DNA of 64,000 bases from Pecten maximus (GCF_902652985.1 NC_047025.1:34472001-34536000); one strand, 5' to 3'; counted from the first letter of the stretch, positions 49,343-62,900 are shown. Numbers and translations are program-made. The notes: generated by a model from the sequence alone, not told the origin.

Positions 49343-52300
49343 GACAATATCAAACTAAGTGGACAATAACTGAAACACCATATTATAATGTGTCTAACGA
49401 ACGCTAGGTTGTTTATCCTTCATAAAAAATGGGTCCATAGACCTTGAATTGATCCAGGATCCTGTTGGATGACTTCGCCCAAAAGGCGAATAAAAATGTA
49501 CTGAAGAAGCTGTCTGAGGTACCAACGACGGTTCCCCAAGAACTGTTTGATTTTCATCCTAACGACATGGTTGAAACTGTCAACAAAAGGGTGAGAAAAC
49601 AAAAAAATACCACAGATGCCGACATAGAAGAATCGGAAGTACCACCCCTCAAAAAGCCTAAAGGCAAAGCAGGTAAAGTGACGACAAAGAGGTTAGAAGA
49701 AGCAGCCTCTAATAGGACATCACAAGAAATAATTAGCGAAATTAGGAAGGCTACAGATCTAGAGATACAGCCTTTGTAGGGAAAGTTTCGTAAAGATGAC
49801 AGTCCAACAGACAAAGTTTCGTAAAGATGACAGTCCAACAGACAAAGTTTCGTAAAGATGACAGTCCAACAGACAATCGGGATCAATTTTCCAACATGCA
49901 GGATGTACAAAGCGATACTTATGTAACAGGAGAAAGAGAAAATGTAGCAGATTTTAATTCCTTCTACTGTAACACCGACCTATCCTCCACATGGACCATA
50001 GTACAAGGATTGAGTAATGACATGCCGGGTGTACCACAGGAAGATACACTGAACAAGGTACCATGCAGGTATGTAAATGTTGGAATTAAATTTCAAAATA
50101 CCACAGTACTAATCATAATCGTACAGACAACATGAATTTGTATTTTAAATGAACACTCTTACATGTTAACATAACTTCGGTGTAATACAGTATTGAGATG
50201 CCTTGTGATAATACCATTGTATATAAATACAAGTCATTAAACACCAAACCTATAGCTTAAGTAACCACATTGACATTGAGAAAGAATTTTAACAAATTTA
50301 TATTAATTACAATTCCATCGCATGATTAATATGTTGGAGATTGTAACTGATCCAGCTACCATAGATTGGTTGAAGAAATGTTTAAACCATTTCAAAAAGT
50401 CAACATGTCACCATTCCAACATGGCTAATTGCTTTGAAGTAATTAAGTACCTGGGCATGACATTTTCAGTTGAAACTGTACTCTCAAACTATGTCTTGCA
50501 TTTAAAGCCTCAACTACGTATTCAAAATTTACTAAGGAGTATATGCTATATATGTCAGAGTGATTAGAATTAATATCATGTGTACATAAACAAGTCATAG
50601 TTGTTCTTTTCTATGTAATTCTAACTTTAATTTTGTTACTCTCCGTTATTGGTGCAGAGTTGAAACTTTGAACATACCTGGTATTATAAAATTATGAAAA
50701 TGTCTTGATTTCTCTCAAAATATTATTATGATTATCATTATTTTAGAAAAGTTTTAGCTTCACATCATTAAATCTATCCAAAAGTGATAAGCATGAATTT
50801 CACTGATTGCTATACTCAAAATAATTTAGAATATTTTTAAAAATTGTAGACTGCACCTGTCGCTCAAGGCCAAACATTTGTTCCCTGGAAACGTACAGAC
50901 TGGGGTTCCTACTCAAACAGGATGAACACACCTTCATTTGCAATAGGAAGTGAGGCACAAGCACAGACTAGCTACTTTAACCAGGCAGATTTCAATTACA
51001 GTATGGTATGTTGCATTTCTAACATAATTAATACTCTATCTTTCTGATTTTTAATAATTCATTAAAAACGATAAGTAATATTCGGTTTCCCATCATGAGT
51101 GTTTCATTATCCAGTTTAGTATACTGGAAGCAAAAACCTTCTTTAATGTATGCTTGTCAATAATTATTGACTTATTGGTTATTTTGATGGTTGTTTTAAG
51201 TTATAATTACTGGTAAATAAAAGAAAACATAAATAAAAGAAAAATTCTATCAAAAGTGATGTACATGTACTAAACTAGGTAATATGAATATTGATGTTTT
51301 GATAGCTTTTCTAATGAAGAGAAGACAAGATTTACTTCAGTTATTATTGCATTGCAGGGAGATTCTCAACACTTCACGCATAGAAACCCAAGTTATGTCA
51401 ATTTAGACTCTCAGGATAAAGAAGTAAGTGATTTTTTCATCTAAATGACTTTAAATAAATTTTCTCATTTCCTGCTTCTTTAATTCTTCTGGTTCAAATG
51501 AGCTTAAACTTTGCAAGAGTGTAGTAGAAAGGAAGACAAAGTGTTAAAAATTTTTTGAGACTGTTGGAAATCAAAGATGGCTACATGGCATATATTGAAA
51601 AGAGAGCACTAACTGTGATATTTCAATGAAACTTGTCAAAACTGGTTCTGAGGTGATCTTTAAAAATGTCCTGGAGTTTATTTTTTGTTATGGTGGGTGG
51701 GATCTACTTTTTTTGTAGTGCCATAGTTGCCATCTTCGGCCTGATTAACTTCCAAAGAGTTATATATCATGTTAGTGGAAACGTCATGCTGACAAAGCTG
51801 TTTGTGATATGTATTTACAATATAACTGGTACCTTGTGTTTTATAAATATTTTTTTAAAGAAAATAAGTGTGTCTTAAGAAAGATTGGACAATGATAACA
51901 TTTTTCATGGTTGTTACAGATGTATACAGAAGCCCTTCCCACACTTGCTCCAGTGCCTCCAAATCTGCATTCTTCTAACAGCACTTCAGTGATGGTAAGA
52001 ATTTGCTTTAAATCTTGAAACAGAAATTCCAATGTATGTATCTATTTCAAATCTGAATAGAATAGCATAAGCTAAGAAGTAAAGTTCACTAGAATACTGT
52101 AAGCTGTTATTGAAATATACGTGTCACTGTACTTGAAGTGTTTCAATTTTTTACAGGATCATTCAACACCTCTCAGAAGATCGCCACAGAAATCTCAGAA
52201 TACAGAGCATGACCTTGAGAACATTGTTGAAGATGGAAGTATTTCTGCCTTTTTCATTTTATGTTATCTAAGATAAATTCTACATATCAAACTCCATTCA

Positions 52301-53594: not shown

Positions 53595-54327
53595 TTATGC
53601 GGAAAAAAAATCATTATTGAACCAATATATATTTTTGAAATTGGACTAATTCGTTTTCCTATTTTTTCTATTTACTTTGAAAATGTTTTTAATTAGGAAA
53701 AAAAAGGAGAAATAAGTGAATGGTGACACTTTATGAAATAACCGTCATAGTGTTTTTGTAGCCCATTAGAAATCCTGAAGACGCCTCCAACTTATTTTTT
53801 TAATAAACCAAGAAAACCTATCCATTCTATAAAAATCAAATCGGAATTACCTTCAAAATCCTATCAAGTTTTCAAAAAAATCCTATTGGGTTTTCAGCAA
53901 AATCCTATCAAGTTTTCAAAAAAATCCTATTGGGTTTTCAGAAAAATCCTATGAGGTTTTCAGAAAAATCCTATCAGGTTTTCAGAAAAACCCTATCGTA
54001 TTTTTCTAAAATCCAATTGGATTTTTATCTAACCTCTAGATGCAGATGATACAACTGAAGGAATCACAAGTGGTTTTCCTGCACGGATTTTGAAATCTGA
54101 CTGGATTTTTTTTACAAACGGATTTTCCATATAAGGAAAATCTGACTCTATTCATTTAAATATTACCACCCTGATTTCCGACTAGATATTGGTTTCTCCG
54201 ACAGCATTTTCAAAAATACGACTAGCTTTTGATAGAATATAAAGAGAGGAAAATATCCGTACAGATTTTGCTTTCGATAACCCGATCAGATTCCATTTGC
54301 TGCCCGACTGGATTATTTCGTACAGGG
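53595..54327. mobile_element. Probable non-autonomous DNA element with ~21-bp sub-terminal repeats (EnSpm/CACTA-like?)
   Basis: Repeated aaaatcctat..gttttca motifs at 53855-54020 and a ...cgtacaggg end. The left terminus is not clearly defined. Confidence 0.35.
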
Positions 54328-54463
54328 AGTACACAATGGGTATATATAGATGTTCACCCTACATAATCAAACTGTCCATGCATTGTACACAATGGGTATA
54401 TATAGATGTTTACCCTACATAATCAAACTGTCCATGCAAGTTCATTCAATTCTAGCTATTCTG

Positions 54464-57400
54464 CTACTGTATGTTTATCCCACAAATTCTGTCCATAGAA
54501 CATCCAACACAATCAGTGCAGGGTTCATAAAGATCTAGATACAAAAGTGTAACCATCCAAGGAAATAGCCCATAAATTGTCCAACTCAAAAGAGTCCAAA
54601 TAAATTCCTTTGTAGTTGCTCCTGATTCTGAATGTCCTCTTGAACTCCTGAGAATATTGTGGTATTCCACACAATTATCATAATAATTCACCGATCGTCT
54701 TTTCTGTAATGAAAATACGGGAGAAAATTGAAGAATCCTATACTATTTAGAATTTTATACTGGTAGCTATATAAGTAGTACATAAGCTATAAGTTAAAGA
54801 TAGCATTTGACATTAATATGCATAATTAGTAAACATAGTCTTGACACAACTGTAAGCTTCTAATACATGTAGTTTCTTAAGATGTATAAAGTATCAAATG
54901 TCACTAGTACACTGTTTCACAATACATTTAAGTCATAATTTCTTTATTTCTTTGTAAATTGTCGCTAAGAAAAATTGTTTTAAAAGGCTTAATTGAATTT
55001 ACAATTTTGTGTTGAAAATGGAATGGAGTTTAAATTTTGTCCCAAAAAGTAACAAATTACCTCTATATTAGATATAATATAAAAAGGATAATTACTGAAA
55101 CCTATAAGGAATTACAATCATACTGGTAAGTTTGGTAGTACATTACATACAATTTCACCTTTTCTTGAAAACTTTTGCTGCCCTTTTTGTCTTTTCTGTT
55201 GTCCCTTTCTCTAGACCAGAACCATCCAGACTTTTCTGTCCCCACGTGGTGTTCTTATGATTTTCCGTAGTGTATTCAGGCAGTCCAACCTTAGCTGTAG
55301 TGTATTCAGGCAGTCCGACCTTAGCCGTAGTGTATTCAGGCAGTCCGACCTTAGAACACTTGCTCAATGCTTTCTCCCAGGCTTCACAGCTAATGTATGG
55401 TATACCTGTATCAATGTATAAACCACAGTAGTCAAGCAAAGTACACTTATATACTTCTAAGAGTTTATGTTTCTTTTGTGTTTCGGTCATGTAAACTAGC
55501 TGTTCTGTTAGCTCTACTTATTTACTGGTTTACCACCTACATGACTCTCTCTATCACTAGGTTTCATGTCTCTGACAATAGTCAGTGTTCTGTAGGCTAG
55601 AGTTAGTTACTGGTTTACCACCTATATGACTTTCCCTTTTGCTAGGTTTTTAGTGATTAACTTTAGTCAGTGTTCTGTCGGCTATAGTTACATTGTAGCT
55701 ACTAGTTTACCACCTACATGACTCTCTCTATCACTAGGTCTCATCTCCTCGACTATAGTCAATGTTCTGTAGGCAATAGTTAGTTACTGGTTTACCACCT
55801 ATATGACTCTCTCTATCACTAGGTCTCATCTCCTCGACTATAGTCAATGTTCTGTAGGCAATAGTTAGTTATTGGTTTACCACCTACATGACTTTCTCTA
55901 TCACTAGGTCTCATCTCCTCGACTATAGTCAATGTTCTGTAGGCAATAGTTAGTTACTGGTTTACCACCTCTATGACTCTGCCCATTGCTAGGTCTCATC
56001 TCCTCGACTATAGTCAATGTTCTGTAGGCAATAGTTAGTTACTGGTTTACCACCTACATGACTCTCCCTATTACTAGGGTTTATGTTCCCGACTTTAGTC
56101 AGTGCTCGATCTGCCAATGTTTCGTAATGAGAATAATCCAGACATAATTATACAAGACAAAATGATGTTGGTACCTAGTTTATAAGCAAGCTTCTCTATT
56201 TCTGCCTTGTTAGTTGCATCACATGATCCATGAACTACAAAGTCAGTGGCATTGGATAGTTTCTTATCTACGGTGCAGCCATGCATTACAGCTTTAGATA
56301 CCGATCTATGGAGGTCATCCTGATTCATCCCTGTAAATAACACTCTGCGTTCGTTCATATCAACCATGGGTACTACAACGATAAAAATGTCATGTCAGCA
56401 TCACAGAAAATATACAAAACAGATATATCTGAACATATGATGCAATGATATCAAAATCCCCATATAGCTTAAAGACTAATTGGAAAAATACAAAGTGTAA
56501 CAGTTTGTTCCCCCTTTCAATTGTTTATAAAAGCATTGTTAATAAATAGGTCTAATATTGGATAAGAAAATACAAAAGAGACTGAGTATCAGTAGAACTG
56601 ATGAATAATCCACAAAAACAACTTGATTGGAGGTTGTCTGTGAATTTTGTATTTGGTCAATTTCATCTATAAAACTATGTTACAAGAGGCCAAACAGGCC
56701 TGCATAGCTCACCTGGAATTCTATTCTTTGATGATTTTCTGCCTACGAGTTGATCAAAAGGACTTGATTCTAGGATTTCAGCTAATAAGAAGTCCTTCAT
56801 ATATATATTTTAAAAAATTTACTTCTTTGACCTTAAATATGGGTCAAGGTCATATTGCATTTCTTTTCCCGAACTTTGTGGGCTCCACCCCAGGAAACAC
56901 CAGCTAGCTGAATATACTTCTAGGCATTTTAGTTTGTGAGAAGAAGTTGTTTGAATGTTTTAACAAATTTGATCCCCTGACTTTCAATATGAGTCATTTC
57001 ATTTGCAAACTATGTGGAACTCCATATTTAAGGAACTATGTGGAACTCCATATTTAAGGAACCTACCAGCCAAATTCCTGATCCTGTCTGAATTGTGGGC
57101 AGACCTATGCTCTGAACATGAAAGACAGTTGGGAAGACAGACTAACGGCAACTTTAAACATGATGCACTCCCCCAAAAATTTTGGGAAGCATGAAAATAC
57201 AGATATCTGAATGGTTTGATTCCTAACAGGAATATTTAAATCACTAATGACCTCTGTTACAGTAAAAATTGAAACCATAATATGGTAGTTTTTTTCTTTG
57301 CCAACAAGATGCATGACTATTATAAATGAATGGAAGATTTAAAAAAATTACCAAAACATTAATATTTTGTTCACAACACAATGAGGACATGACTTACTCA

Positions 57401-59059
57401 ACTCTGGCATGACTGAATTTCTGTTGCTGTTGTCATTTGCTACCTCCATCTTTTTCTGGTTTTTCTTTTCCTTCATCAAAATGGCTAGCATCACTGATAA
57501 AAAAAATATTATTCAGTTATAACCTTTGTTTGCAAAGCATTGATGACAGCAGAAAGACAATCAAAATAGGTCACCCTGACCCATTATGTCTGTTGACCTA
57601 AAATCAGAGTTCTTGATCATGATGGAAAAGGTGATCTACTGGTATATGACATGACTTTATATATTTTTACATTCTGGAGAAGAAGTGAACAGATTTCCAT
57701 GACAGTGTTGTTAAACATTAGTCCAAATTTTAGTTATATCTATAGACACACACAACTTCCTTAATGAATTTAGTCTTGTCATAATATTACTTTCTATTCA
57801 AGAGGGACAGCAATGAAAATATTTTCAAAATGGCAACTATGGCAGCTATCTTTAATGTGACAGGGTTTGGACCTGACCATATACAGCTTTTCAGTGAAAG
57901 TCCTGTCTCGTTACAACGATCCATTCATGCATGAGAAGTAATGATAATAATATTAAATATGCTGCCATGGTGGCCATCTTGAATGTCACATGGTTCATTC
58001 AGGATAAACTGTGGACCAGGCCTTAAACATTAATAGAAGATGTGTGTGTGTGTCATTATAGCAATTTTAACATTGAAGAGCAGCTGTAAGGAGACAATAG
58101 TTTATAGAGAGGCAGACAAAAGACCATAATGTACTGTGATCAGCTCATTTGGACTTCAAGCAATAAAGCCAAAACGAAATAAAAAATTAATTGTTTAACT
58201 AACAAATTGTTAATTAACTATCCATACCATTTTCACTGTAGTCTCTCTTGCGCCCTTTAGATCCAGTAATAGATTTGAATCGTTTCATTGACCGCTGCAC
58301 ATCCCTTTCTGTGATAAGTGTGGACTCTAGTGGCAGAATGGCTGCCTTTTTAGCTGCTCGTAATGCCAGCTGGTCAGCATGGTCATTCCCATCAACTCCA
58401 GCATCTGAAGGGATCCAGTCTATAGCCACACCTACACCTTGAGACACGATATAATCTCTCTTCTGTCTGATACTCACAACAATATCTTTGTATGCTTCAA
58501 ATGTATCATATAAACATCCTTTAATCACCTCTTGGTTATCACAAAAAAATTGAATTTTATCCAGGTCAATAAGATTGATATTTTTAGTAATGTGAGACAG
58601 AGCTTTCTCTATTGCAGTGTATTCAGCTAGCTCAACTGAGGCCCGTGCTGACACAGGGACAGATAACTCTGCAACTTTCGTCTTATCCTTTTGATAAATG
58701 ACGGCTCCAATACCACATGGCCCCACTCTTCCTTTAGAGTCTAACACGGAACCATCAGTGTATACTACAAGTGTATTTTCCGGTAAAGATGTTAATATTT
58801 TCTGATACATTTCTTTTGCATATTCTATTTTCTCATCCGTTCTCATTCCATACCAATAATTAGGAATAGAATTTGCATATTTTCTCAAAAACTGAAGCTC
58901 CCTGCTAACCACATGTGGTAAGCATTTTTTATGGTTACATTCACACACGCTGGCTGGAGACGTGGAAGTTTGATTAGGAGTCAGCACATTTGTAATTTTT
59001 GCTACATTTAAAACATGATAGAATACTCTACATGGTGTCCGTCTACGTAGCACAAACAT
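54464..59059 (-). CDS. Uncharacterised protein: presequence-like N-terminus + retrotransposon-type RNase H + BRCT + tentative C-terminal TM/Cys-rich tail (~548 aa, 6 coding exons)
   Basis: Exons 58228-59059, 57398-57493, 56175-56372, 55159-55405, 55061-55094 (tentative), 54464-54703 (tentative); GT-AG, in phase, no stops. RNase H motifs VYTDGS, SVELAEYTAI, FFCDNQ, WIPSDAGVDGNDHADQLA. The BRCT-like segment RVLFTG..HGCTVDKKLSNATDFVVHG..KLAYKL|GIPYISCEAWEKAL is completed across the intron. Confidence 0.8.
55500..56100. repeat. 85-bp tandem repeat x~7 in the intron that splits the BRCT domain
   Basis: Anchor actggtttaccacct (or close variants) at 55524, 55609, 55701, 55786, 55871, 55956, 56041. 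Confidence 0.9.
56175..56372 (-). CDS. BRCT-like domain exon
   Basis: ttgtag|..VDMNERRVLFTGMNQDDLHRSVSKAVMHGCTVDKKLSNATDFVVHGSCDATNKAEIEKLAYKL|gtacc; resembles the BRCT pattern of NAD-dependent ligase and RFC1. Confidence 0.75.
56681..57198 (+). mobile_element. Degenerate HINE-like element
   Basis: acaagaggccaaacaggcctgcatagctcacctg 5' end, tttgaccttaaat..ggtcaaggtca core, 3' stem cccaaaaattttggg. Confidence 0.5.
58228..59059 (-). CDS. RNase H1-like domain exon (non-LTR retrotransposon type)
   Basis: The four acidic catalytic residues (D-E-D-D) are present and the conserved WIPSH His is replaced by Asp. Acceptor caacag precedes 59068, donor gtatgg follows 58228. Confidence 0.9.
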
Positions 59060-59179
59060 TCTCTTGACCTGTTGGTAGAAAATGAGAAAAGTCATGAAAA
59101 AAAGTAAAAAACAAATTTAGAGTATTGTAATATGCATATGTTTATATACTCATACAAATGTAAACGAATACATGTACTA

Positions 59180-59207
59180 TAGCCCGAGTTTCCTCTGGCC
59201 CTGACAC
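59180..59207. repeat. 28-bp TIR-like sequence, exact inverted copy of 42862-42889
   Basis: tagcccgagtttcctctggccctgacac. Confidence 0.9.
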
Positions 59208-59799
59208 GAAGTGACAGGAGCCCTTGAGCCAAGCTTCCACAGGAATTTGACCTTCCATAGAGAAGAATACTGTATAGTAGTACTAGGGTGTATTTCTGCA
59301 TTCAAATTGATTGGTACAAATTATGTATTTGTCAGCTATCCTACTCATGGTCACTTACGCATCACTAACCAATATTTAAATTGAATGTTTCCTCTTAACA
59401 ACATATTTAGGCTCAGGTTACTGTGGCTGCATGGTGCTTAGTGGCACTAAATGGATAAGCCATCCACTACTGATTGACAAAGCTCACTAACCTAGAAACT
59501 TTGGGATTCAGATTTTTTGTGCTACAATTAGTGGCAACAATGTGATCTAACTTTCTGAAGTAGTTTTCATGCTACAATATATATAATATATAACAATCCA
59601 TATAGATACCTAGTATACTACCTAGGTGACTTTTTATATACAGGATAATTCTATATAGATTAATCATATGTGTTTAGCAAGCTCTCGATCATTAGTCAAA
59701 GTTCGTTTGACATAATATGTCATAATCGACTCTCTTTGACTATGATATACTACGAATATTATGTTATAACATCACAGAAAGATAAAAAAAAATACATGT

Positions 59800-59979: not shown

Positions 59980-62900
59980 ATGGCTGTCAGACAATTTTCC
60001 AAGATTTCCAAACTGCTCCCACAAAATGCAACTTTTGTTGCATCGAGTAAGCTCAGGTAACAAATTGAAATATTATTATACATGTGATACGGTTGTCATG
60101 ATTTCTTTTGATATATTCCTCCATTTCGGTGTAAATATCCAAATGCGTTTAGGCCTATAGCATTGTCAGCAGACCACGTTTTCAAGTCGTGTTAGTGTCG
60201 GTGACATTGTCTAAATATAGGATAAGTAAGATTATGAGCTCGTATGTTGTAAACGTGTGTTTCATTATGCCTTACTTTTTTGCAGAGACGATATATTTTA
60301 TGCAATCTAAATCAGATTGACCGGGCCCTATATCAAACATTGTTGGCCTACATATATAATCACTGTCAGAAATTATCAACTTATTAAGATACTTTGATGG
60401 TACCCTATAGTCAAAAGAACAACATCCATGAATTCCATTATCGACATAGGAGTTTGGTGTTCTATCAATGAAAATATAAGATAATCTATTAAAATAGCAT
60501 AGATACTATAAAACAGACTTTTTGTATTCTTATTAATAGAATGTCCGATTGCATTGTGTAAATTGTCTAATGATTGCATCGTTATCTTTTGTTTCCAACA
60601 GGAGCATGCCAAGAAGACAAAACTGACATGCAAACACACGCTATCTCAAAACAGATAAAATGATAGGGGCAAAATGTAAACAAACTATAGATTTACATAA
60701 AAAAAAAAATTATAAGGGTTGTTTGCTTCATTGACAACACCTACCTTTTCAATCTAGCCCTATATATATGAAATCAAGATAGGACTAATGGGACATAATT
60801 AATGTTACATCTTTCAAATGAGAACTGGCCTGGTGGCAATTACCATTGGTCATCAAACATGTCTCATTTCACATTACATATAATAATAGGGGATGATGAT
60901 GTTGTCAGAACTTATCATCAAAACACAGTGCTGCTAAGAAAAGCTGGATAAATTATTGTCGTCCAAATTATTCTGATATTTTATCAACTTTTTAAAAGAG
61001 ATTGTCTGGATTAAAATCAAAACTCAGGCCCCTTAAGGTTTTTAAACATTATTATTTATAATAACATTGATACAAACTAGAGACAACAACAATTTTTACA
61101 TAGCTTTTTAGTTTTATTCACATCCGATATACATGTGTATATACAAAATATGCTTTTCAAGTTAATCAATTATATTTATTAAGGTCACAGGGGTCAAATG
61201 TGTAAATATCTTTGAATTCCTTCTTGTTAATAAAGAGGCTCAGAATTATGATATGAATTCTTACTGTAGCATGCAAAGGAATTGTGTTGAACATGGTTCA
61301 GATATGTTAATTTCTTTCGATGATTTCTTCTCATTAACTGTGAGCCCATGGCCATGCTTTTAGGCCAGTAGTATGCTGGGATTAAGGGCTTCTTAGTTTG
61401 TTCCGATTAATGACCTTGACCTATTAAGGTCACAGGGGTCAAATATGTTAAAACATTTATGTTATTTGATTGATTTCTTCTCAATAACCAAAATGCCCAG
61501 GTTCATGATATGGTTGTATGTTGAGATAAAGTGCTGCAGAATTTGTTCAAAGATATAAACTTGTATTGCACACCTGTTGGAATGAAGGGTATTCCACTTA
61601 ATATCATCCAGGTCTTGCATTAGTAACAGATGAGCAATACAGACCAATTGGGCCTCTCTTTAAGATATATCTTTATAATTATATCTACAGCTCAACATGG
61701 GCTAATGTGGAAATGGGTCCACCAGATGCCATTCTTGGAGTCACAGAAGCATTCAAACGTGACACCAATCCAAAAAAGATTAACCTGGGTGTGGGAGCTT
61801 ATCGTGATGACAGTGGGAAACCATTTATCCTGGAATGTGTCAAAGAGGTAATTAGGAGCATTCATTCCACTGTTTAATTGCTTTTAGTCAAAAGTGCTGA
61901 TGATATGAATTAGTAAATACTCTTTTAAAGTCTGAAGTTAAATGATAAATCAATTAAAAAATATATAGATGATAGTAATGAAAATATATGAACCAAATTA
62001 TGAACACTTGGATGTTTAAGCATTTTATCCAATATCTCATTGCTTTACAGGCTGAGCAGATGATGCTAAGGGAAGGTGTAGACCATGAGTATGCCCCTAT
62101 CACTGGACCACCCGAGTTCTGTAAGGAGGCTGCAAAGCTGGCATTCGGGAATGACAGCTCAGTCATCAAGGAGGGCAGGGTGAGAAGCAACTGTGAAGAT
62201 TTTATTCATAGTATTATCCCTGCTTAAGCAATGTTAGACTTGTTTACAGGAAGATATTTTTGATAAACTATAATTTTAAATGTTGAACATCTCAAAATTA
62301 ATTCCCAAGGTGAGGTTTATTTATAAGTCTTTCTAAGGGATGGATGGCCTCCATATAACATTGAAAATTAAAATATTACTTTCTTTCAGAATGTAACAGT
62401 ACAAGGTGTGTCGGGAACAGGATCACTCAGGATCGGTGGTGCCTTCTTTGTGAGTTTTCTTGTACCCAATAAATACATGTTAATTGTATTTTGTACTTTA
62501 TTCTTAAAATATTAATGTGAAAAGCAGTTTGATATTGCTATCTAATTGATAGTTTAAATTGTCATTTTTTACCCCTTAGGATAGGTTGTGCATTCTTTGT
62601 GAGTTTTCTGATACCTATTAAGCACATAATATATATTTGTATTCAAAAGATAAGGTAGCAGTGTACAGTAAAAATGCCCAATTTTGAAAAATATGACACA
62701 TGTCTTAGATATGTAAACAGCCAGTTAACCCTACATATAAACTCTAATGAAGTATATATATTTGTAATCTGTACAACATTTGCAATTTTAATACAGCTCT
62801 GAAGGATAAGTCAACTGATATTTTCTGTGATTTTTAGAGCTGTGAATACCATGGTAACAGCTTAAAAAATGTTCAAAAATTGCAAAATATTATGATATTT

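Follow-up and report, generated by a model that had tools for sequence, protein, structure and literature searches.

Does the retrotransposon-type RNase H encoded on the minus strand of this 64,000-nucleotide stretch of Pecten maximus DNA (referred to as a whole as the window) belong to a mobile element, or has it become part of a host gene? The original prediction was one of exaptation, a host gene with introns in which a non-LTR retrotransposon RNase H had become joined to a BRCT domain, and this view was supported by sequence kinship, splicing, single copy number, and conservation. The LOC117337197 locus is a real, expressed scallop gene in which a retrotransposon RNase H is spliced to a BRCT domain. 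As to its role, we consider it reasonably probable that the protein is a BRCT-targeted RNA:DNA-hybrid nuclease domesticated from a retrotransposon.

Five exons were found on the minus strand (59059-58228, 57493-57398, 56372-56175, 55405-55159 or -55151, and 54703 downwards), with a predicted protein of 458 or 462 aa, depending on the isoform. All four introns are bounded by GT..AG and the spliced frame is free of stops, as had been proposed; the model is residue-identical to the Pecten maximus RefSeq entries for isoforms X2 and X1 of 'uncharacterized protein LOC117337197'. Transcript contigs from two studies contained the joints of all four introns, including those that link the RNase H and BRCT exons, with two runs each for introns 1 and 3 and four runs for intron 4. 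The intron 2 joint (exon 2-exon 3) was found in one low-depth contig with an 18-nt anchor and 4 unmatched letters, and the RefSeq model is concordant with it. The spliced joints indicate that the transcript runs derive from RNA (the RNA label of the runs is a guess), and contig depth over the gene was low (2-5). Six exons had been proposed earlier, against the five found here; an extra 5′ untranslated exon is possible, and the contigs do not cover that part. The predicted GOT2 neighbor was also located, as GOT2-like aminotransferase exons arranged head-to-head at 61707-62227 and beyond.

The coding part of exon 1 (58228..59059), defined by its ORF, RefSeq identity, and the donor joint at 58228 (2 runs), begins with an ATG at 59059-59057 and encodes aa 1-277 and ends one base into codon 278; its product comprises a new N-terminus, a flank derived from ORF2, the RNase H core, and the post-RNase H segment. 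Intron 1 (57494..58227; 734 nt, GT..AG, joint 57493/58228 in contigs from 2 runs) separates it from exon 2 (57398..57493), a linker (VMLAILMKEKK...VMPEL) set by transcript joints, RefSeq identity, and orthologue alignment. The start of exon 2 is conserved between species and the remainder is variable; its in-frame joining in the RefSeq-identical model agrees with the phase-compatible linker that had been predicted. Intron 2 (56373..57397; 1025 nt, GT..AG), placed by the one crossing contig and the RefSeq model, leads to exon 3 (56175..56372), which encodes the BRCT from its first strand through helix 2 (aa 310-375) and was identified by a Pfam BRCT match, a genome HMM scan, and invariant residues. 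Beyond intron 3 (55406..56174; 769 nt, GT..AG, joint in 2 runs), exon 4 (55159..55405) supplies the last BRCT strand and helix (G376...W385...C392) and then a low-complexity, Lys-rich tail, as delimited by repeat finding, joints, RefSeq, and orthologues. Exon 4 has two alternative donors, of which the one ending at 55159 yields isoform X1 and the one ending at 55151 yields isoform X2; both 3′ isoforms were present in contigs and match XP_033753937.1 and XP_033753938.1. In isoform X2, an in-exon TGA stop at 55157-55155 is retained and the protein ends in ...KKR. Intron 4 (54704..55158; GT..AG) measures 455 nt, which use of the alternative donor shortens to 447 nt (joints 54703/55159 and 54703/55151, 2 runs each), and is followed by exon 5 (54300..54703, covered by contigs over 54300-54703), which gives isoform X1 four codons (KDDR) and a TGA stop at 54690-54688, hence the ending ...KKRKDDR, and is otherwise 3′ UTR. 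Apart from the gene structure, intron 2 carries dispersed repeats at high transcript-contig depth (56805-57138), and intron 3 contains an 85-bp tandem repeat of 6.5 copies at 55518-56078.

The origin of exon 1 was examined through its relatives. In a profile search, the nearest relatives, among the matches listed, were the RNase H segments of non-LTR ORF2s with APE, reverse transcriptase (RT), and RNase H (RNH); the listed matches that were checked were RNase H-only, RT+RNH, or APE+RT+RNH ORFs. When full APE+RT+RNH sequences were used as tblastn queries, they matched the window only at 58226-58942, the RNase H part, and homology extended ~45 aa upstream and ~35 aa downstream of the RNase H domain. 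In keeping with the earlier remark that no reverse transcriptase lies nearby, neither RT nor APE/endonuclease was found in the 64-kb window. Many near-identical copies with RT attached were also looked for; the gene proved to be single-copy in the 918-Mb genome, with one locus at 100% and the next-best own-genome matches only 32% identical and sited in long retroelement ORFs, and its BRCT exon is unique in the genome. An autonomous non-LTR retrotransposon was rejected as an identity for the locus, there being no RT or endonuclease at the site and no similar copies. These alignments indicate that one exon is a captured non-LTR ORF2 fragment, comprising the RNase H with ~45 aa before it and ~35 aa after it, which gained 48 new residues at its N-terminus along with a splice donor within the old ORF. 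The N-terminal 48 aa (58916..59059) lack retroelement homology, as judged by tblastn homology that starts at ~58942-58915. Splicing now connects the RNase H exon with the linker exon and with one BRCT domain, which is encoded in two parts by separate exons.

The minus-strand ORF at 58214-59095 (293 aa) matched Pfam PF00075 with an E value of 1.6e-10, and the four orthologues all scored above the cut-off (40.7-56 bits versus 25.8). The catalytic core (aa 95-240, 58340..58777) was delimited by Pfam, PDB sequence matches, retroelement alignment, AF2, and Foldseek; the AF2 model of residues 70-240 had a pLDDT of 88-98, and Foldseek matched it to type-1 RNase H structures with an E value of 3e-10 and a TM of up to 0.86. 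The intact D-E-D-D set that had been claimed was confirmed as D102, E146, D174, and D229, which do not vary among the four species and line up with those of the retroelement kin. The quoted motif WIPSHxG was misread; the actual letters are WIPSDAG, and the histidine is absent. In the loop before the last helix, scallops have PS-D/N/G-(A/S)-G, in contrast to PGH in 15 aligned retroelement relatives (one of them PSH), and the lost residue, equivalent to E. coli H124, is not conserved even among the four scallops. A 3-aa insertion was also found in the strand 1-strand 2 loop, adjoining the first catalytic Asp. The post-RNase H segment (aa 241-277, 58228..58339, and into exon 2 to aa 285), delimited by orthologue identity, ORF2 alignment, and the tblastn end at 58226, is the most conserved part of the protein, with 86% mean pairwise identity and 34 of 45 columns invariant; LPLESTLITERDVQRSM is invariant and is followed by GSKGRKRDYSEN. 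This segment is homologous to retroelement ORF2 as far as the splice donor.

The invariance of the four carboxylates that bind metal makes it most likely that the protein has retained cleavage of the RNA strand in RNA:DNA hybrids. Its turnover is probably altered, given that the general-base/product-release histidine is lost, and the activity could be weak. Alternatively, after loss of the histidine the protein may cleave very slowly or not at all and act as a sensor or scaffold, a hybrid reader whose RNase H domain mainly binds hybrids and whose BRCT recruits partners; for this reading speak the replacement of the histidine of the 15 aligned relatives by D, N, or G in four scallops and the 3-aa insertion beside the first catalytic Asp. 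However, the invariance of the four carboxylates and their surrounding residues over four genera is hard to explain without catalysis, and we regard such a reader as unlikely. Some active RNases H have a carboxylate in place of the loop His.

The BRCT domain was assigned from several lines of evidence. Pfam BRCT (PF00533) matched the exon 3 ORF at 21.7 bits (E 2.4e-4, cut-off 21.3), with 17.6 bits for the full protein, and three of the four orthologues matched the BRCT HMM at E<=1 (best, 0.0011). A genome-wide BRCT HMM scan placed exon 3 among 22 matches (19.8 bits, or 23.6 with its neighbours), hhalign against BRCTs of the same genome gave an E value of 0.02 in the right register, and language-model features scored 0.92 and 0.91 to BRCT clusters. 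A PDB sequence search gave no match for the BRCT region. The fold was judged by the order beta-alpha-beta-beta-alpha-beta-alpha over ~90 aa. Our own AF2 models were poor over this region (pLDDT 31-67), with a secondary-structure order in the first model that agrees with BRCT, and the ESM Atlas model of the Mizuhopecten orthologue (residues 314-399) matched BRCTs at a TM of 0.75-0.79 in all ten of the matches listed. The sequence evidence for a BRCT is marginal, and the fold is supported by the independent predicted model of the orthologue. As had been foreseen, the domain is completed only by splicing, the KLAYKL/GIPYISCEAW junction being seen. BRCT hallmarks are a hydrophobic strand 1 with (S/T)-G, a Gly turn after helix 1, and a Trp in helix 3. 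In the scallop protein, VLF-T323-G324, H340-G341, and W385 are invariant in four species (for the hallmark positions of BRCT domains, see the review PMC10386641). T323, G324, and K365 are likewise invariant, and position 363 is T, T, T, and S in the four species. The resulting T-G ... (T/S)-x-K signature, kept in the scallop BRCT, is assigned to the phosphate-binding pocket of BRCT domains.

On the strength of this signature and of ligase/exonuclease-type structural neighbors, the BRCT most likely tethers the nuclease to a phosphate mark. Single BRCTs bind phosphates on DNA or phosphopeptides (PMC10386641), and RFC has a 5′-end site (PMC9293004). Putative ligands are poly(ADP-ribose), DNA nicks or ends carrying a 5′-phosphate, and phosphoproteins at sites of DNA damage or replication, and the BRCT-tethered RNase H would remove hybrids at the marked site. 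Both ligand and compartment are motif inferences, with the nucleus, the mitochondrion, or both as candidates. A special case of this targeted nuclease, rather than an exclusive alternative to it, would be a retroelement restriction (or assistance) factor. Its BRCT would recognise the 5′-phosphate at the nick made by a retrotransposon endonuclease, and its RNase H would destroy the RNA template within the adjoining hybrid formed by target-primed reverse transcription, aborting (or completing) insertion, so that the host turns the element's own nuclease against the element. The RNase H does come from a kind of element abundant in the scallop genome, the nearest BRCT structural neighbors, among those listed, are of the nick-/end-binding ligase type, and the gene, like many defence genes, is confined to a single lineage and changes rapidly outside its domains. 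We assign such a factor a low probability. Quite unlikely, too, is the more specific form in which a LINE RNase H has been turned into a guided nuclease, whose ligase/RFC1-type BRCT reads the 5′-phosphate and places the RNase H on the adjoining hybrid; its targets would be target-primed reverse-transcription intermediates or break-associated hybrids. If true, it would represent a previously undescribed class of retroelement-derived genome-defence/repair factor.

The termini bear on where the targeted nuclease would act. The claim of an acid-free stretch of 39 residues held, the first acidic residue being at position 40 (24, 21, and 22 in the other species), with 2-5 R/K before it and an amphipathic moment of 0.56-0.83 in what is a crude composition test. 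In all four species the N-terminus is presequence-like, basic and Ser/Thr-rich, with a conserved R-[VI]-[FL] motif. Human RNASEH1 has an N-terminal mitochondrial presequence and dual localisation. Conserved basic, NLS-like clusters were also found (GSKGRKRD and the Lys-rich tail), and these clusters together with the BRCT would fit a nuclear role equally well as the presequence fits the mitochondrion. The 10-aa repeat noted earlier is real (30 bp x3 at 55265-55354) and specific to Pecten. The hydrophobic segment with CTDCVGC (ORF 54464-54691), from which a membrane tether had been suspected, is out of frame in both splice forms and lies in the 3′ UTR; it is untranslated and absent from all orthologues, which end in a Lys/Arg-rich tail. 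A C-terminal membrane anchor was therefore rejected, as translation of either splice form ends ahead of the hydrophobic ORF or in another frame. An RNA:DNA-hybrid nuclease tethered to a mitochondrial membrane could draw on the N-terminal 20-39 residues, which in all four species are free of acids and have 2-5 Arg/Lys and many Ser/Thr, but it is very improbable given that the hydrophobic segment is out of frame and missing in orthologues, that the basic clusters and the BRCT suit a nuclear protein, and that the N-terminus is the least conserved part of structured length (36% identity). Matrix targeting without an anchor would be compatible with the BRCT-targeted nuclease and is given tentative, minority credence.

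Full-length orthologues were found only in Mizuhopecten, Argopecten, and Ylistrum (60-64% identity), and an intact ORF with the five-exon architecture was found in four scallop genera. No further full-length match came from a profile search against 1.84 billion representatives; among the best 150 matches, only the scallop orthologues join such an RNase H to a BRCT, and every non-scallop match listed covers only profile positions ~30-281. By these searches, the gene appears to be restricted to scallops and conserved in four genera. Between-species identity was 66% for the RNase H, 86% for the post-RNase H segment, and 66% for the BRCT, compared with 24%, 27%, and 36% for the linker, tail, and N-terminus, respectively. 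Within the species, transcript contigs differed at 12 synonymous and 8 non-synonymous positions (pN/pS ~0.18, binomial p 2e-4). Exon 4 accounts for five of the eight non-synonymous positions: K387R, within the final helix of the BRCT, and four in the tail. Taken together, these data indicate that the RNase H, the segment after it, and the BRCT are under purifying selection. An artefact of annotation, or a functionless chimera in decay with a dead remnant of a retroelement read through into a neighbouring BRCT gene, would suit the low contig depth (2-5) and the bare name 'uncharacterized', but is the least credible reading in view of the intact ORF with the same five exons in four genera, the invariant catalytic residues and BRCT core, the pN/pS of 0.18, and the single copy.

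Among known systems, the best sequence relatives are the RNases H of non-LTR ORF2s, including Mytilus edulis and own-genome copies (profile E 1e-25 to 1e-10), with which the scallop protein shares TDGS, GPCG.G, (F/Y)(C/S)D.Q, and W.P...G..GN(D/E).AD. Unlike these ORF2s, the scallop gene has no RT, APE, or zinc knuckle, is single-copy, spliced, and BRCT-fused, and its RNase H lacks the PGH His and has a 3-aa insertion, a 5-aa deletion, and a new N-terminus. Like human RNASEH1 (PDB 2qk9), it has a type-1 RNase H fold and a DEDD active site, although similarity to that enzyme reached only an E value of 1e-4 in the search against the PDB. The PF01693 hybrid-binding domain was not found in the Pecten protein or in the two orthologue proteins searched, whereas a canonical RNase H1, with the hybrid-binding domain and the GHTGIAGNEAAD motif, is encoded separately in the scallop genome (contig C4) and keeps the catalytic His. 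Identity with cellular RNase H1 was rejected on the lack of PF01693, the genome's PF01693 exon adjoining the canonical RNase H exons on contig C4. The closest solved folds, Halobacterium RNase H1 (4e19), LC11-RNase H1 (3u3g/4h8k), and the N-domain of M. tuberculosis Rv2228c (3hst), are prokaryotic type-1 RNases H without the basic protrusion (TM 0.79-0.86 and rmsd 2.3-3.4 Å to the scallop model over ~145 residues, 22-26% identity), which stand alone or occur in other fusions, without a BRCT. The nearest predicted-structure neighbors of the BRCT, among those listed, are single BRCTs of NAD-/ATP-dependent DNA ligases, RFC1, and bacterial RNase_T (DEDD exonuclease)-BRCT proteins. The scallop BRCT has 'V-L-F-T-G' and a Lys further on in common with an RFC1-like BRCT exon of its own genome; beyond motif level, no sequence relationship to these neighbors was found. 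The bacterial exonuclease-BRCT proteins resemble the scallop protein in design, likewise pairing a nuclease of RNase H fold with a BRCT, but they come from another domain of life and their nuclease is of another family. A literature search turned up no description of an RNase H-BRCT fusion or of a host gene made from the RNase H of a non-LTR element, a blank that is not proof of absence; if the guided-nuclease reading is true, this would be the first case, within the literature searched, of a host gene founded on an RNase H from a non-LTR retrotransposon. Mammalian host genes domesticated from LTR retrotransposons have been reviewed (PMC3406341). Like them, the scallop gene keeps a retroelement coding fragment as a single-copy, intron-bearing, conserved host gene; they come from gag, protease, integrase, or RNase H-integrase, whereas the scallop gene comes from a non-LTR RNase H.

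The gene model of LOC117337197, on the minus strand of the window, was read from the DNA as five exons with a script check. Its domains are marked by a 293-aa ORF (58214-59095, minus) that matches RNase H in Pfam (E 1.6e-10) and solved RNases H by sequence, and by two ORFs holding the first (56095-56367, minus) and second (55155-55490, minus) halves of a BRCT-like domain. The exons run from 59059 to 58228 (exon 1), 57493 to 57398 (exon 2, the linker), 56372 to 56175 (exon 3, BRCT), 55405 to 55159 with a second donor at 55151 (exon 4), and from 54703 downwards (exon 5), and all four introns carry GT..AG ends in the window DNA by script check. The exons were joined by script for comparison with database proteins and for classifying SNPs. 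The five-exon product was identical at every residue to the 458-aa P0001, listed as XP_033753938.1 ('uncharacterized protein LOC117337197 isoform X2 [Pecten maximus]'); the gene is already in RefSeq as an unnamed prediction. Isoform X1 (P0154, 462 aa) ends in ...KKRKDDR, as predicted from the 55159 donor, at which the frame reads ...AAG AAA AG/A AAA GAC GAT CGG TGA with the stop at 54690-54688. When the 55151 donor is used, a TGA inside exon 4 (55157-55155) is retained. Searches were run with exon references and with proteins from the database, namely P0001, P0154 and their orthologues.

Transcript contigs from four public runs of two studies (runs X1, X2, X3 and X5, labels unrelated to the isoforms) were placed on window positions 54300-59300. 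The joint from the RNase H exon to the linker exon (57493/58228) was present in runs X1 and X2, and that between exons 3 and 4 (55402-5/56172-5) in runs X1 and X5, in agreement with the original prediction that the BRCT domain is made whole only by splicing. The last-exon joint 54703/55159 was found in runs X1 and X2, and the alternative 54703/55151 in runs X3 and X5. In these four runs the joints were bounded by CT..AC on the plus strand, equivalent to GT..AG on the minus strand. The runs' RNA label is a guess; origin from RNA is shown by the spliced joints themselves. The linker-BRCT junction (57400/56370) is weakly supported by reads, being seen in one low-depth contig (run X1, record 4) with an 18-nt anchor and the frame length kept; four letters (CACA) at this joint differ from the reference and the expected exon ends, which could reflect allelic variation, an error at the contig end or a shift of the splice site. 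RefSeq models from each of the four species lend this junction independent support. Thus, of the splice chain originally proposed, the joints of the RNase H, linker, BRCT and last exons appear in contigs, and the step from linker to BRCT is the one seen in a single low-depth contig. In Argopecten irradians, comparison of P0003 with P0155 showed that isoform X2 drops the 66-codon BRCT exon 3 in frame, leaving no complete BRCT; no joint skipping this exon was seen in the Pecten contigs.

Several repeats lie in and around the gene. Intron 3 contains an 85-bp tandem repeat (55518-56078, 6.5 copies, 85% matches), and summed contig depth at 55970-56136 reached about 630-1190 in each of the four runs, compared with 2-5 for the exons, so that the 85-bp unit is part of a dispersed repeat found abundantly in transcripts. 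Contig depth rose to about 110 in intron 2 (56805-57138) and to about 1100 just 5' of the coding start (59143-59300), in both cases with many loose ends; these two stretches probably represent TEs or other interspersed repeats that flank the gene. A 56-bp repeat in two copies lies in or near the end of the 3'UTR (54329-54438), and a 22/44-bp repeat (6.5 copies) lies downstream of the gene (53855-53997).

The most striking element of the original prediction, a membrane anchor formed by a hydrophobic segment followed by CTDCVGC, proved wrong. The ORF that encodes it (54464-54691) is in a different frame from both observed splice forms and is therefore 3'UTR, and every orthologue in the four-species alignment terminates in the same short Lys/Arg-rich tail. 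The 10-aa threefold repeat was borne out, as a 30-bp coding repeat in three copies (window 55265-55354) that gives KVGLPEYTTA x3; the expansion is specific to Pecten, since a single copy of the unit is present in the other three scallops.

The origin of the RNase H domain was examined with a profile of the scallop proteins, which was compared with 1.84 billion representative proteins. Full-length matches came from the scallop cluster only. Among the 150 matches listed, the non-scallop ones (E 1e-25 to about 7e-10) all fell within profile positions ~30-281, and the ten of these that were compared with Pfam carried RNase H alone, RT plus RNase H, or APE plus RT plus RNase H; two were from Mytilus edulis. 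In alignment, the scallop proteins and their retroelement kin share an upstream P.YW...RT..Q (with a 5-aa deletion in scallops), TDGS...GPCG.G (with a 3-aa insertion in scallops), the Glu motif, the second Asp motif and W.P...G..GN(D/E).AD, and the likeness continues for about 35 aa past the RNase H domain. Given that tblastn matches reach the exon-1 donor at 58228, this splice donor arose inside the former ORF2. Residues 1-48 of LOC117337197 showed no retroelement homology by tblastn or alignment.

The four active-site carboxylates are intact as predicted, D102, E146, D174 and D229 being invariant in the four species. The 'PGH' His, present in 15 of 15 aligned retroelement relatives, is replaced by D in Pecten and Ylistrum, N in Mizuhopecten and G in Argopecten; the motif first quoted as WIPSHxG actually reads WIPSDAG. 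The expected RNase H fold was recovered by AF2, which with a 51-sequence alignment modelled residues 70-240 at pLDDT 88-98 (the model from 4 sequences was poor, with a mean pLDDT of 42), and Foldseek matched type-1 RNases H without the basic protrusion (4e19, 3hst, 3u3g and 4h8k; E about 1e-9, TM up to 0.86). The invariant segment that follows the RNase H includes Q-R-S-M-K-R-F-K at residues 255-262 of P0154 (minus strand, window about 58274-58297); Q-x-x-M-x-x-F/Y is found in each of the four species and is followed by the basic cluster GSKGRKRD. At the level of motifs, this stretch resembles a degenerate PCNA-interacting (PIP) box.

Two other identities were considered for this RNase H. The locus can no longer be classed as a retrotransposon, being single-copy and devoid of RT and APE. 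A six-frame search of the whole assembly (918,306,378 bases, 3,983 contigs) with the RNase H ORF found one locus at 100% identity, and the remaining matches, at 31-32%, lay within long ORFs, one of them at a locus with RVT_1, RNase_H and zf-RVT domains; many near-identical copies were not seen. Full-length APE+RT+RNase H queries matched the 64 kb window solely at 58226-58942, with their RNase H part, so the earlier statement that no reverse transcriptase lies nearby holds. In the own-genome search no paralogue of the BRCT exon was found, and the matches of exon 4 were low-complexity repeats. The second identity, cellular RNase H1, shares the enzyme class, but cellular RNase H1 has a hybrid-binding domain, which LOC117337197 lacks, and is a separate gene; LOC117337197 is therefore not cellular RNase H1. 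The canonical gene lies on contig C4 of the Pecten assembly (about 22586800-22593000, minus; loci L014, L043 and L044), with one exon for the hybrid-binding domain and several for the RNase H, among them VVYTDGGC..., ...TDSQF... and GHTGIAGNEAAD / HVRGHTGIAGNEAADRLA, so that LOC117337197 is an extra RNase H. An identical hybrid-binding-domain exon match on the small contig C1786 (L013) has the look of an uncollapsed haplotype. On the plus strand, GOT2-like aspartate aminotransferase exons (PF00155; 61707-61877, 61988-62227, and on beyond the end of the window to 34537171-34540290 of contig C11) lie head-to-head with the RNase H-BRCT gene, and because the coding starts are ~2.6 kb apart, a shared bidirectional promoter is possible. 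A 104-aa frame with many Lys and acidic residues (…KKPKGKAGKVTTKRLEEAAS…) at window 49465-49779 (+) is possibly an exon of a neighbouring gene.

From sequence alone, assignment of the second domain to BRCT was marginal. The first-half ORF scored 21.7 bits against a Pfam cut-off of 21.3 (E 2.4e-4), and the full protein 17.6 bits, with three of four orthologues matching at E<=1 (best 0.0011). In a genome-wide BRCT scan exon 3 was among 22 matches (19.8 bits, or 23.6 with its neighbours), and hhalign against the BRCT exon alignment of the same genome gave E 0.02 in the correct register. Profile searches against the PDB returned no BRCT match, and a region search with P0001 residues 305-400 for BRCT kin returned orthologues only. 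AF2 with 51 sequences gave pLDDT 31-67 for this region; with 4 sequences, the order of strands and helices was as expected for BRCT, at low confidence. Unrelated BRCT sequences were kept out of the AF2 alignment because the prediction would then be circular. Independent support came from the ESM Atlas. In its language-model features, P0001 308-400 and P0002 (the Mizuhopecten orthologue) 314-400 were nearest to BRCT clusters (0.92 and 0.91, respectively). Moreover, when residues 314-399 of the Atlas's own predicted model of the Mizuhopecten protein were superposed on BRCT domains, TM was 0.75-0.79 in each of the ten rows listed, which comprised DNA ligases and DNA-ligase-family proteins including LigA, RNase_T-BRCT exonucleases, Lsr2-family DNA-binding proteins and stand-alone BRCT proteins. 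The hallmark BRCT positions VLF-T323-G324, H340-G341, G376, W385 and K365, the last with T/S-x before it, are invariant across the four species. With high confidence we take the predicted BRCT as established.

Constraint was gauged by domain-wise protein identity and by within-species transcript differences. Mean pairwise identity among the four species was 66% for the RNase H core, 86% for aa 241-285 (in which LPLESTLITERDVQRSM is invariant) and 66% for BRCT, with 24% for the rest of the linker, 27% for the tail and 36% for the new N-terminus. Transcript contigs differed from the reference CDS at 20 positions, 12 synonymous and 8 non-synonymous, over 271 synonymous and 980 non-synonymous sites (pN/pS 0.18, binomial p 2e-4). 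The RNase H exon and BRCT exon 3 each carried 6 synonymous changes and 1 non-synonymous; exon 4 carried none and 5, respectively, of which four affect the tail and the fifth, K387R, the final BRCT helix. The two measures agree with each other, and they are matched by an ORF that is intact over its five exons in four genera. Taken together, these data show that a retroelement RNase H, domesticated and joined by splicing to a single BRCT, is expressed and constrained.

Since all four carboxylates are invariant, the protein would probably still cut the RNA of RNA:DNA hybrids. The lost His aids proton transfer and product release in the E. coli, HIV and human enzymes, and its loss suggests altered kinetics. 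The (S/T)-G ... (T/S)-x-K signature marks the phosphate pocket of BRCT domains. Single BRCTs bind phosphates on DNA, PAR or phosphopeptides (PMC10386641, PMC9293004, PMC6334254). Given this signature and these ligands, the BRCT probably recruits the nuclease; its putative targets would be ends or nicks that bear a 5'-phosphate, or else phospho or PAR marks where DNA is damaged or replicating. Target-primed reverse-transcription intermediates would make an attractive putative special case, in retroelement control. The N-terminus is presequence-like in all four species, and the conserved basic clusters (GSKGRKRD and the tail) together with the BRCT are compatible with the nucleus. Human RNASEH1 is dually targeted, and by analogy the same is possible for the scallop protein.

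LOC117337197 is clearly real and unusual, and is lineage-restricted, known from four scallop genera. No RNase H-BRCT join besides the scallop proteins occurred among the 150 matches listed, and the literature searched described neither such a fusion nor a non-LTR RNase H host gene. The retroelement-derived host genes known so far stem mainly from LTR elements (gag, envelope, protease and integrase); a non-LTR RNase H-BRCT gene that is conserved, spliced and single-copy would extend the range of domesticated retroelement parts. If borne out, it would be a natural pairing of an RNA:DNA-hybrid nuclease with a module that reads DNA damage or DNA ends, and how hybrids are found and removed at breaks, nicks and replication forks is an active question. 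Such a natural fusion would offer a simple system for studies of BRCT targeting. Compared with known systems, LOC117337197 is a type-1 RNase H in fold and active site that lacks the His, and its nearest analogue in design, a nuclease joined to a BRCT, is found in the bacterial RNase_T-BRCT exonucleases.
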